A DNA stretch of 64,000 nucleotides, from the sequence record AP019418.1; one strand, 5' to 3'. This document shows, piece after piece, positions 5,179 to 22,294 of the stretch. A program made the position numbers and the translations under genes. The notes below the pieces were generated by a model. The model was given only the letters and a program-made list of their open reading frames with translations. It did not search any database and was not told the origin of the DNA. Within the stretch, counting starts at the first letter, position 1, and every line of letters begins with the position of its first letter.

Positions 5179-5415
5179 TTATTTCCTCGATTGATTCCAG
5201 TTAAAATTATCTTTTGCATTTTTAGTGAAGAACCCGTTACCCCAACCAAATGAGTATCTAAAGTCCTTGATTACACCAACATCCGAATCGATAACCTTAT
5301 ATTCAATGACTTTATCACTATTCTCCAGAATGACTAAGATCGCGATAAGATCTTTAGGATCACCTACAGTCAATTCATGTCTTTCAGACTCGTCTCTGTG
5401 GATAACGATGTACAT
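5179..5415 (-). CDS. hypothetical protein (78 aa)
   Basis: ORF track; GAGG RBS. Confidence 0.75.
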   Translation of the reverse strand: MYIVIHRDESERHELTVGDPKDLIAILVILENSDKVIEYKVIDSDVGVIKDFRYSFGWGNGFFTKNAKDNFNWNQSRK

Positions 5416-5432
5416 GGTACTTTATCCTCTAA

Positions 5433-5948
5433 TTATACCCATTTAGTTACTGGGAGTTCGAAGGTTTCACACAAGTCGAGTACTTTACGATGTTCCAAGT
5501 TATTTTCTGGATAGAAGGTAATGGGTGTAGTCGGACTACCCCAATTAACACGACATCCAGTTTCTTTATGGATTTCGCCAAGTACAGTATATGCACCTGC
5601 CCCATCTGCATAACCCATTTGATTAGGGTTAACGCAGATTTGAGTAAAACGCTCCGTCAATACTCGATTAATAGTGATGGTCAAGAGACGAACGAACTCA
5701 CGAGTCTTCTCGATGTCGTCTACCCAGAATTCCAGAAGGATCCATTTCCCATGAGGGTTATCATGCCCACCTTGGAAGAATACACAGAAACCTTCTTTTG
5801 CCTTATAAAACTCGTGATTGGTAATGTTACATTCAACCATTTGTTTCACTGCATGCCATACACGCTCGGTGACATAATCACCATAAAGTTCGATGCAGTG
5901 ACCACGGCCAGGGAATTGTTCTTTTTTAGAAAATTTAATTTCGAACAT
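5433..5948 (-). CDS. hypothetical protein (171 aa)
   Basis: ORF track; first gene after promoter cassette copy 2. Confidence 0.75.
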   Translation of the reverse strand: MFEIKFSKKEQFPGRGHCIELYGDYVTERVWHAVKQMVECNITNHEFYKAKEGFCVFFQGGHDNPHGKWILLEFWVDDIEKTREFVRLLTITINRVLTERFTQICVNPNQMGYADGAGAYTVLGEIHKETGCRVNWGSPTTPITFYPENNLEHRKVLDLCETFELPVTKWV

Positions 5949-5958
5949 GGTATAGATT

Positions 5959-6028
5959 CCTTTTTACATTAATTGAAGGTTAAATATCAAGTTAGTAATA
6001 TACTGGTTAAAATGGTTTGAATGTATTA
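5959..6028 (-). repeat. early promoter plus leader/RBS cassette, copy 2
   Basis: 47 bp identity with 4108-4154; TATATTAC at 5995-6002. Confidence 0.9.
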
Positions 6029-6042
6029 TCGGTAGGGGAGGG

Positions 6043-15452: not shown

Positions 15453-15510
15453 ATTTAAAATAAGTTGTAATAAAATACCTAGTATTACATGTTATGTATT
15501 GAAGCACAAT

Positions 15511-17134: not shown

Positions 17135-17210
<76 letters not shown>

Positions 17211-17216
17211 TATTCT

Positions 17217-17241
17217 AAAGAGTAGCTTCGGCTACTCTTTT
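17217..17241 (+). terminator. intrinsic terminator
   Basis: AAAGAGTAGC-TTCG-GCTACTCTTTT. Confidence 0.85.
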
Positions 17242-17294
17242 ATGTTGCCATGGGTTATCTTATGAATTAAAATGATTTACTTGAGAGCACACTC

Positions 17295-18302
17295 ATGTTT
17301 GAATTACTATTATCGCCAGATATAGGCGAAGAGTTACCCTTGGTTGGATTTAATGAAATTATTAAATTAGGTGATCTACCTGTAGCGTTAGCTGGTACAA
17401 TGTCATATGTGGATGGAAATACACTGTATGTTGGATCTGGTCATCATACTGAAGGACAAACAGCTGCAACTGTGTTCAGACGTTTTACCATATCGCCATT
17501 TGCCGATATAGGTGCAACTGCTTCTGGAACATTCTTACCAGGGGTATCTTTAGGATTTGGGACATTACATAAGAATAACTTTATTGTTTATGGCGGTATT
17601 ACTGGATGGAACTCGGCTGGTAATGGTGGTACGGGAACATCTAACTTTATACAACATTTTGATATAGCTACAGGCAATAGGGTTGAGCGATATAGTGGTC
17701 CCGTACCACTTTGGGGCACAGCCTCCGCATCAGATGGTAATGATCTTATTATGTGTGTTAACCCAGTTGGGGTAAATGCAATGCGGTTAAAACCATCGGG
17801 TAAGACATGGCTTAGTGGGCAAGATTATTCAGGTGGTGCTCGTTCAGGTCAACAGTTATTCTTTTATAATGGTTACTTTTACCATTTTGGTGGTTGGGAT
17901 AATACAAAGAACATACCTAATCTTGAAGTTTATCGATATAATGCAACTACCTTAATATGGGAGCAAACACCTTGGATGATTATACCTGCTGATAAAGGAA
18001 CAATCTGGCAAGGTAATGGTTATGTAGATGGGGACTATTTTAATTACCTTAACGCTGTTGATGTCGGCGGTGTAACTAAAATGTTTGCACAACGTTTTAA
18101 TATTAGGCGCCGGAAATGGGCTGAACCATTTGAACTAGGTATCGGATTCCTTAATATTTCATCTATAGCTAAAGGTCCGGATAATAGCATGATCATTGTA
18201 GGTGGATCTAAAATGCCAGTTGGTGGTGGAGCATATATGTTGAAAAGCCAATTGTTATCAGGTATCTATCAGGTAAAACTAGCGCCATTAATCATTGATT
18301 AA
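17295..18302 (+). CDS. kelch-like beta-propeller protein, possibly virion-associated
   Basis: 335 aa; repeated VYGG, FGGWDN, IVGG with downstream aromatic/W at kelch-like spacing. Confidence 0.65.
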   Translation: MFELLLSPDIGEELPLVGFNEIIKLGDLPVALAGTMSYVDGNTLYVGSGHHTEGQTAATVFRRFTISPFADIGATASGTFLPGVSLGFGTLHKNNFIVYGGITGWNSAGNGGTGTSNFIQHFDIATGNRVERYSGPVPLWGTASASDGNDLIMCVNPVGVNAMRLKPSGKTWLSGQDYSGGARSGQQLFFYNGYFYHFGGWDNTKNIPNLEVYRYNATTLIWEQTPWMIIPADKGTIWQGNGYVDGDYFNYLNAVDVGGVTKMFAQRFNIRRRKWAEPFELGIGFLNISSIAKGPDNSMIIVGGSKMPVGGGAYMLKSQLLSGIYQVKLAPLIID

Positions 18303-18354
18303 AATAATAATATTTATAACTATTTAGATAATTATACTGGCACGATGATATTAT

Positions 18355-18466
18355 GTAAGAGTACTATAATAAAGTATTCTTAAATCTATCCACTAAACAC
18401 ACTCGGTGGTAGAACTTATTATAGAGTGTGTCTAAATGCCAGGGGTTTGCCACCCCTGGTTATATT
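18355..18466 (+). ncRNA. candidate structured sRNA (two hairpins, possible pseudoknot, terminator)
   Basis: starts at TATG; stems 18356-65/18373-82, 18394-404/18424-34, 18439-46/18452-59 plus T-rich tail; no ORF. Confidence 0.6.
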
Positions 18467-18586
18467 CATTGTTACTATTATAAATTCATTTATAGATGAG
18501 AAAAGGTTTTATCACCTTTTCAAAATCGGCATTTAATTCCAGTTAAAAAACTGAATCTATGCTACATTGTAATAAAGGAGTCTATT

Positions 18587-19099
18587 ATGACTAACTCTAA
18601 TCAGTTTGTAAGAACTATTGTAAAGTACCAAGATATCCTAGATGCTTTAATTCAAAAAACGAATGAGAACTGGGTTAATTATCGATCTAATTCTATTGGT
18701 CATATTGTTATTCGTGAATACAGGACTGTTGGATTATTTGTAGGTCGGCAATGTGGTAGTACAACTGCATTGATTGAGTTTGCTAATCGTCATCCTGGCG
18801 AATGTCTAGCTGTATTTGTAGAAGATAAAATTAAACAGGCTGTACTGGCTAAGTTCCAGAATGCTAAAGATAATATTGTTTCTTGTTTAATTACACACCA
18901 ACTCCGTAAATATATTCATCAACCTGAGGAATCATCTATTCAAAAAGATATTAAAGAAGAATTAATATCGTCTGTAAAATATATTCTTGTTGACAATGCC
19001 TCATTTAATCTGAACCTACGCGGTATCACTGATAAAGAATTTAACCAGTGGGTTGCAGATACTTTTGGTACAGAGGTAATGGTGGTTCGTTTTAGTTAG
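18587..19099 (+). CDS. hypothetical protein with degenerate P-loop-like motif
   Basis: 170 aa; VGRQCGSTT after a beta strand; YILVDNA resembles Walker B. Confidence 0.55.
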   Translation: MTNSNQFVRTIVKYQDILDALIQKTNENWVNYRSNSIGHIVIREYRTVGLFVGRQCGSTTALIEFANRHPGECLAVFVEDKIKQAVLAKFQNAKDNIVSCLITHQLRKYIHQPEESSIQKDIKEELISSVKYILVDNASFNLNLRGITDKEFNQWVADTFGTEVMVVRFS

Positions 19100-19259
19100 A
19101 ATTAGTAACTTTGATAGTTTCTAATAAGATTAACTACACGTTATTTACATAATGTCATAACAAGAAATAAATAATACTCAGATTGTAATAATATGTAGTT
19201 ATTACATATCTATATTAGGTTGTCAGTAACTCATCTCTAATATAAAATCGCCATTTAAT

Positions 19260-19335
<76 letters not shown>

Positions 19336-19466
19336 ATTCATAGTTTTAGATTTAGTTATATTTCACTACTATGTAAACTATAAAGGCAGCTAATGCTGCC
19401 TTTATGTCGTCTTGTAAAAGTACCCAATAGTTGAATCTTATAGCTGAATACAAATAGGGTAAAGAC

Positions 19467-21231: not shown

Positions 21232-21378
21232 ATTTAGTATCCTATTTACAATTAATAGAAAATATTACTTTTAGTAATATCAAGTTAATGATATACTGTT
21301 TAAATATGTTTGAATATAACTTTATTTATTATAATAAATAAAATAATACTTTCATATACACTATATGTAGAAGATTCC

Positions 21379-21455: not shown

Positions 21456-21803
21456 AATTTACTGAGGTTTAAACTATTCTTAAATATATTAGTTAGGATG
21501 GGATTGAACGCGAAAGACTCAGTAAATCATATTGCCCCTCCATATGGAGGGGCTTATGTTTGTCATTAATCAGGAAAATATAAAATGAGTCATCTATTAT
21601 TTATCATCCAAGAATACATTACTAATAAATTTGAGGTAACACGAATTGATATGAAGCCAGGTAATAGAATGTTACGTGTATGTTTATACGGTCAACATGA
21701 GGGAAAAGGTTTCGTCCGTATAGATTTATGGTCAGTTGGTTATCGCATTACAAAGAAATAATACTCCAGATTATTTAATATGTATTAATCAAAGGAGTTT
21801 ATA

Positions 21804-22214: not shown

Positions 22215-22294
22215 AATACTTACAGCTATCTAGTATGTAACTAGGCGGATTGCCATTTGTAAATTATCTATTTAATCAAACTGAGGAAATACTA

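Follow-up and report, generated by a model that had tools for sequence, protein, structure and literature searches.

Fold, conservation and genomic context of 3'UTR_PHIKZ298, a published small RNA in the leader of PHIKZ297 of phiKZ-type jumbo phages

RNAs C and D (species 1 and 2) of phage T4 are small stable RNAs encoded among the T4 tRNA genes and co-expressed with them; they are cut from the tRNA precursor transcript, and their function was long unknown. phiKZ serves as the model of nucleus-forming jumbo phages and is a possible agent for phage therapy; its small RNAs have been catalogued, yet to our knowledge none of them has a known function. One of these, 3'UTR_PHIKZ298, was recovered by Grad-seq as an RNA of approximately 100 nt from the spacer downstream of PHIKZ298 (Gerovac et al. 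2021, mBio; PMC8545117). It was abundant on northern blots, where the probe also showed longer mRNA-like species, it sedimented in light fractions 3-4, apart from ribosomes, and it was read as a fragment of the PHIKZ298 3' UTR with two stem-loops, the second being a terminator (PMC8545117). Using ONT-cappable-seq and a northern blot, Putzeys et al. (2024, microLife; PMC10914365) re-annotated the RNA to 270595-270485(-), tied a transcription start site to it and described it as also derived from the 5' UTR of PHIKZ297, with processing kept as a contributing route. Other short RNAs derived from phiKZ 5' UTRs were reported as well (17 candidates), for instance 71 nt before PHIKZ221 and 141 nt before PHIKZ302 (PMC10914365). 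Detection, termination and read-through of the RNA are taken here from these published texts (PMC8545117, PMC10914365). Added to them are a three-hairpin fold with covariation, block-wise conservation, a link to the gp297 leader, natural deletions and a promoter class.

Compared by description with T4 RNAs C and D, the phiKZ RNA has a start and a terminator to itself and is followed by a protein gene. It is like the other phiKZ 5'-UTR-derived RNAs in having a promoter, a terminator within 250 nt, and an abundant short RNA with a minor read-through mRNA. It is unrelated to them in sequence and structure: covariance model R1 matches only the RNA itself in a window that also holds the 141-nt RNA and another candidate. 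With bacterial 5'-leader attenuators and riboswitches (trp-type, T-box) it shares a terminator placed between promoter and start codon and the pairing of short and read-through transcripts; however, a conserved anti-terminator, a leader peptide and an Rfam match are all absent from it.

The locus and the published RNA

The window, that is, the whole stretch of 64,000 nt that was analysed, is assigned by its sequence to a phiKZ-type jumbo phage. Among Pseudomonas jumbo phages, 54 records match positions 17200-19400; phiKZ (NC_004629), in reverse orientation, does so at 99.7%, and by blastn the spacer at 18303-18586 is 100% identical to NC_004629 270365-270648(-). Coordinates were converted as w = 288951 - phiKZ coordinate, which places the published 270595-270485(-) base for base on window positions 18356-18466 (+). 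With identical sequence and with the published ends at 18356 and 18466, the RNA is the same molecule as 3'UTR_PHIKZ298. A sequence-only reading had proposed a compact plus-strand ncRNA running from a TATG start to a terminator, and the published mapping agrees with this at both ends; the molecule is no new candidate, having first been reported in 2021 and re-mapped in 2024. The features of the locus are as follows.

17295-18302, plus strand: PHIKZ298 homologue, Kelch-type virion/tail protein (NC_004629 annotation; phrog_19623; weak Kelch/NanM Pfam matches)
18326-18355, plus strand: promoter, with ATAC at 18334-18337, 14 nt, and TATG at 18352-18355; G18355 is the expected +1
18355-18466, plus strand: ncRNA of 111-112 nt, 3'UTR_PHIKZ298 (papers; coordinate mapping; covariance model R1, 136.9 bits)
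18356-18382, plus strand: 5'-terminal hairpin 1 (arms 18356-18365/18373-18382; predicted fold with 10 bp including one G-U, 7-nt loop)
18383-18393, plus strand: single-stranded linker, of which 18385-18393 is complementary to the loop of hairpin 2
18394-18434, plus strand: hairpin 2 (arms 18394-18404/18424-18434; predicted fold with a 19-nt loop)
18438-18466, plus strand: intrinsic terminator (stem 18438-18460 with 9 bp, 6 of them G-C, a 5-nt loop and an interrupted U tract)
18467-18586, plus strand: distal leader of PHIKZ297; contains the ribosome-binding region and, at 18500-18521, a conserved hairpin
18587-19099, plus strand: PHIKZ297, 170 aa, ATG at 18587 (NC_004629 annotation; phrog_2586)

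PHIKZ298 and PHIKZ297 both lie within the phage tRNA region. The former was conditionally essential for adsorption in a Tn-seq preprint (PMC12676376). The gp297 protein has a Walker-A-like GxxxxGST without the lysine and an hhhhD motif; no named family for it was found in the ESM Atlas, which gave distant P-loop leads only (ResIII, Gp16). In PhiPA3 and Psa21, homologues are encoded within or close to the tRNA gene clusters, and 201phi2-1 and EL have further ones. Downstream of tRNA-Asn-2, reference phiKZ carries the HNH endonuclease gene PHIKZ296 (approximately 775 bp extra), which is missing at window positions 19336-19466 when these are compared with 5196-6042 of the retrieved reference phiKZ segment, and is also missing from MKR2, GUMS and others. 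The window, being without PHIKZ296, therefore represents a close relative of phiKZ and not the reference strain itself.

Over 18300-18600, no Rfam covariance model (including tRNA and T-box) matched at an E of 1 or better, and model R1 found no second copy of the RNA in the 64-kb window or in PA1C, phiHQ, BRkr, PhiPA3, Psa21 and 201phi2-1.

Fold and promoter class

A 119-nt stretch of the plus strand folds at -40.3 kcal/mol (z = -5.95), with 0 of 200 shuffles as stable; the opposite strand of the same stretch gives z = -4.66. Hairpin 1 and the terminator are present as the sequence-only reading had described them, and the published 3' end at 18466 lies at the end of the latter. Hairpin 2 with its 19-nt loop is present too, but an A-C mismatch at the third pair had gone unmentioned, so that the solid stem comprises 8 bp (18397-18404/18424-18431). 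The U tract of the terminator has 5 T in 8 bases and is interrupted by two A; the terminator was also called by a simple scan, and it sits between the TATG at 18352-18355 and the PHIKZ297 ATG at 18587.

The top of hairpin 2 (18401-18415, CUC-GGU-GGUAGA) resembles a tRNA D-arm, with CUCAGUCGGUAGA in the neighbouring tRNA-Asn; since the Rfam tRNA model has no match, this likeness may be chance or a very old remnant. A T-box-like reading, in which UGGU would face the NCCA end of a tRNA, was rejected, as no model matched and the terminator is not involved. A pairing of the 3' arm of hairpin 2 with the gp297 start region, seen in long folds, was rejected because it is not kept in T2P.

The predicted TATG start is present at 18352-18355. 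TATG is the late motif of the phiKZ non-virion RNA polymerase, with its G as +1 (PMC4666361), and the +1 predicted from the motif (G18355) differs from the published 5' end (18356) within the 1-2-nt tolerance of long reads. The window holds 10 instances of the arrangement ATAC-N14-TATG, where 4.9 are expected, and in its TATGTA form, with spacings of 10-18 nt allowed, all seven matches in the window have a 14-nt spacing:

15475-15496, plus strand: promoter site of tRNA-Leu
18334-18355, plus strand: promoter site of the ncRNA
19174-19195, plus strand: promoter site of tRNA-Asn-2
21346-21367, plus strand: promoter site of tRNA-Thr
21761-21782 and 22216-22237, plus strand: promoter sites of two ORFs
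25026-25005, minus strand: promoter site of another small RNA candidate

The layout is one of fixed spacing, with an AA-rich stretch, ATAC, 14 nt, TATG and a transcript start of GUA. The ATAC element resembles a published middle-promoter motif centred near -24 (PMC4666361), and from its motifs this promoter type looks like a middle-type element joined with the late TATG. Control of the second tRNA-Asn by the ncRNA, as had been suggested, is unlikely: a promoter of the same class lies directly upstream of that tRNA, with its own start at 19195, and no read-through from the ncRNA element is therefore needed.

Conservation, natural losses and the link to gp297

GenBank records of the region fall into a phiKZ type (29 records identical, 6 at 98-99%) and a KTN4/T2P/OMKO1 type (11 records). 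For the latter type, blastn aligns only 18326-18466 within the spacer, that is, from -30 to the mapped 3' end, at 84-85%. Identity to KTN4, T2P and OMKO1 is 84-87% in the RNA, 77-80% in the promoter and 55-57% in the distal leader, compared with 70% in the gp297 gene and 92-97% in gp298; the RNA is thus more constrained than the gene 3' of it. The near-invariant, gap-free alignment between the clades stops at 18466, and no conservation of the spacer from the gp298 stop codon to -30 was seen.

Individual pairs were examined in a ten-sequence alignment that holds six distinct sequences and essentially one deep evolutionary split, and thus has small comparative power. Hairpin 1 is kept by covariation, with two pairs changed on both sides yet still paired (A-U to G-C via G-U, and G-U to U-A). 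Hairpin 2 shows three one-sided changes, each of which turns a pair into a G-U wobble: two C-to-U in its 5' arm and, at the closing pair, one A-to-G in its 3' arm. Read from the other strand, the C-to-U changes would leave A-C mismatches, which places the RNA on the plus strand, as had been argued earlier from G-U pairs. The terminator stem is invariant save for one G-U to G-C change. The linker is near-invariant between the clades, the exceptions being U18385G and, in T2P, the bulged U18389C, and in the loop of hairpin 2 positions 18405-18413 and 18419-18423 are invariant and 18414-18418 variable. The RNA is better conserved than a bare terminator would need, and the invariant linker and 5' part of the loop hint at an additional function.

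A 36-aa GTG ORF at 18426-18536, annotated as a hypothetical protein in several GenBank records, overlaps hairpin 2 and the terminator. In KTN4 it ends after 16 codons, which rules out a coding reading; the RNA is therefore non-coding and the ORF is probably a spurious call. No relatives of gp298 were found in IMG/VR and metagenomes, and the terminator pattern is absent from IMG/VR. One metagenome match to the pattern of the hairpin 2 3' arm and terminator 5' arm was set aside as chance, as it lies in G+C-rich coding DNA and is without a match to R1.

More distant relatives separate the RNA from gp298. The gp297 homologues of PhiPA3 (gp367, 63% to gp297) and 201phi2-1 (gp436) do not adjoin gp298 homologues. 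Nevertheless, both are preceded by ATAC and then by a G-UAG start (TATG in PhiPA3, ATTG in 201phi2-1), and these starts open a 5' hairpin of 5-6 bp with a stem sequence different from that of phiKZ. In PhiPA3 the motifs of the distal leader recur as well, together with a counterpart of the 18500-18521 hairpin in which pairs have changed. This phage has neither hairpin 2 nor the +111 terminator, and R1 finds nothing in its genome; the terminator module is thus specific to Phikzvirus.

Three relatives with genomes of 300 kb (PA1C, phiHQ and BRkr) have lost the RNA and gp297 together, with three different end points, and R1 finds no copy elsewhere in their genomes:

PA1C: 18371-18978 missing; TATC replaces TATG
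phiHQ: 18320-19117 missing
BRkr: 18308-19175 missing

PA1C (retrieved segment 2448-2579) retains the promoter region together with 15 nt from the 5' end of the RNA and then jumps into the last third of gp297; by sequence comparison, this stretch is a decaying remnant of the ncRNA module. Taken together, the promoter and 5' hairpin before gp297 homologues without gp298 and the joint loss indicate that the RNA belongs to the gp297 leader, although the joint deletion could reflect mere adjacency. In the laboratory, the ncRNA/gp297 region was non-essential by Tn-seq (PMC12676376).

Further observations concern the distal leader and gp297 itself. The hairpin at 18500-18521 is flanked by the conserved motifs UAGAUGA and AUCGGCAU and is kept in KTN4, T2P, OMKO1 and PhiPA3 via changed pairs (G-C to U-A; A-U to G-C); with no U tract 3' of it, it is not a terminator. 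At 18558-18561, 26 nt ahead of the start codon of PHIKZ297, there is a second TATG, which PhiPA3 shares and which is replaced by TATA in the KTN4 clade; it may serve as a proximal late promoter, from which transcription would bypass the terminator. The UAUCCACUAA motif in the PhiPA3 leader was considered as a homologue of the linker and rejected, as alignment sets it opposite the KTN4 distal leader. The gp297 protein of the KTN4 clade is 63% identical to that of phiKZ, as distant as the PhiPA3 protein, which suggests allelic exchange.

Explanations for the RNA

The RNA is probably the product of a promoter-proximal terminator, or attenuator, in the gp297 leader. The phage non-virion RNA polymerase would start at G18355, from a strong stable-RNA-type promoter of the class that also precedes tRNAs; the 5' hairpin would cap the transcript, and the linker and hairpin 2 would follow. 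Most transcripts would then stop at the intrinsic terminator (18466), leaving an abundant, stable RNA of approximately 111 nt that is not associated with ribosomes, and a minority would read through into 120 nt of structured leader and then PHIKZ297. The same terminator must also end PHIKZ298 transcripts. Attenuation of the 170-aa gene, as the sequence-only reading had it, fits the position of the terminator in the PHIKZ297 5' UTR: as the ncRNA lies within this UTR, premature termination must lower read-through into PHIKZ297. That attenuation is the purpose of the element, and that it is constitutive, we infer. The reading had also proposed that an upstream CUGGCA could pair with UGCCAG and so open the terminator in longer transcripts. 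This hexamer lies at 18337-18342 (one base off from the 18338-18343 given), upstream of the transcription start, and is CUAGUG or CCAGUG in the KTN4/T2P clade with an invariant partner; the proposal therefore fails. Additionally, no fold that opens the terminator was found when the RNA or the full leader was folded. With no conserved anti-terminator found, conditional control is unsupported.

Alternatively, the RNA could be a trans-acting sRNA, for which the gp297 leader is just the site of production and which targets mRNAs of host or phage by base pairing, with the linker (18386-18397) or the 5' half of the hairpin 2 loop (18405-18413) as its seed. Its abundance, stability and sedimentation outside the ribosome fractions would suit such a role, and the Hfq range (3-8) begins in the fractions where the RNA sediments (3-4). 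Conservation of the unpaired linker and loop segments equals that of the stems, with the rest of the loop varying, the RNA is better conserved than the gp297 gene, and its promoter class is common to stable RNAs (tRNAs). However, 12-mers complementary to the seeds are not more frequent in the phiKZ genome than reversed controls (33 vs 47 and 22 vs 21), the 3' tail offers no clean poly-U Hfq site, and the RNA is naturally dispensable and has been lost only along with gp297. On balance, a role in trans is unlikely.

A pseudoknot or structural switch would pair the linker (18385-18393) with the loop (18406-18413), as an H-type pseudoknot or an alternative hairpin, and would modulate termination or RNA stability. 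The complementarity had been pointed out beforehand and is present: 8 bp with U18389 bulged, at -8.0 kcal/mol. Duplexes this stable arise in 2.7% of composition shuffles, and likewise in 2.7% of native segments of the window that have this geometry. The pairing is thus modestly unusual, before correction for the several pairings that a reader could have tried. Seven of the eight pairs do not vary between the clades, and in T2P the linker change hits the bulged base; on the other hand, U18385-A18413 is broken in the KTN4 clade (three of six distinct sequences), there is no covariation, and RNAalifold favours a weak nested inner helix that extends hairpin 2 with the same loop bases and that the T2P A-to-G change keeps. 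By a crude energy estimate, the pseudoknot comes within approximately 2 kcal/mol of the nested fold in phiKZ (-11.8 vs -14.0 kcal/mol) and is the lower of the two in T2P (-10.7 vs -8.4 kcal/mol). The alternative linker/loop hairpin has a probability of approximately 0.7 in T2P and is part of the minimum-energy structure of the full leader in phiKZ and KTN4, but its probability is approximately 0 in the 112-nt RNA of phiKZ. Under standard pseudoknot loop rules, an intact hairpin 2 of 11 bp would leave a connecting loop of 0 nt and is sterically impossible; the geometry would become feasible only on opening of the 3-4 weak pairs at the base of hairpin 2, giving a 7-8-bp stem and a 3-4-nt crossing loop. 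Finally, neither alternative touches the terminator stem, so that no mechanism links them to read-through. Of what was claimed earlier, the complementarity therefore stands; the pseudoknot is plausible but unproven, and a pseudoknot or switch as the explanation of the RNA is improbable.

A broader proposal, to be taken as speculative, is that the ncRNA is more than a by-product. Made from a tRNA-class promoter, it would use its invariant CCAC linker and GGUGG loop as a pseudoknot or switch or as seeds, and would either tune read-through into gp297, a P-loop-like protein whose gene is located within or close to the tRNA gene clusters of three or more further chimallivirus genera, or have a trans effect on host RNA or the translation machinery.

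The original proposal of a pure PHIKZ298 3' UTR processing fragment, protected by hairpins and without its own promoter, has several observations behind it. Downstream of the PHIKZ298 stop codon this terminator is the first one reached, the northern probe shows longer transcripts and early-infection dRNA-seq gave no transcription start here (PMC8545117), and processing was kept as a contributing route by Putzeys et al. (PMC10914365). Against this, a start was later mapped by cap-enrichment sequencing (PMC10914365), an invariant TATG stands exactly at the 5' end with an upstream element common to six other starts, gp297 homologues without an adjacent gp298 also stand behind this promoter and 5' hairpin, and the spacer from the gp298 stop codon to -30 is not conserved. 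We regard processing alone as very improbable. Least credible is a functionless by-product, in which the terminator and a stabilising 5' hairpin would merely leave a long-lived RNA: the region is non-essential in the laboratory and lost in three natural relatives, and no target, partner or phenotype is known, but the RNA is 84-87% identical next to a leader of 55-57%, compensatory changes occur in it and its unpaired segments are invariant.

Overall, the promoter-proximal terminator product of the gp297 leader is the best explanation of this RNA. A blind reading of the sequence recovered the published ends of one phiKZ small RNA, which validates the approach and is no discovery. For phiKZ, the comparative additions narrow the experiments needed for finding the function of the ncRNA.
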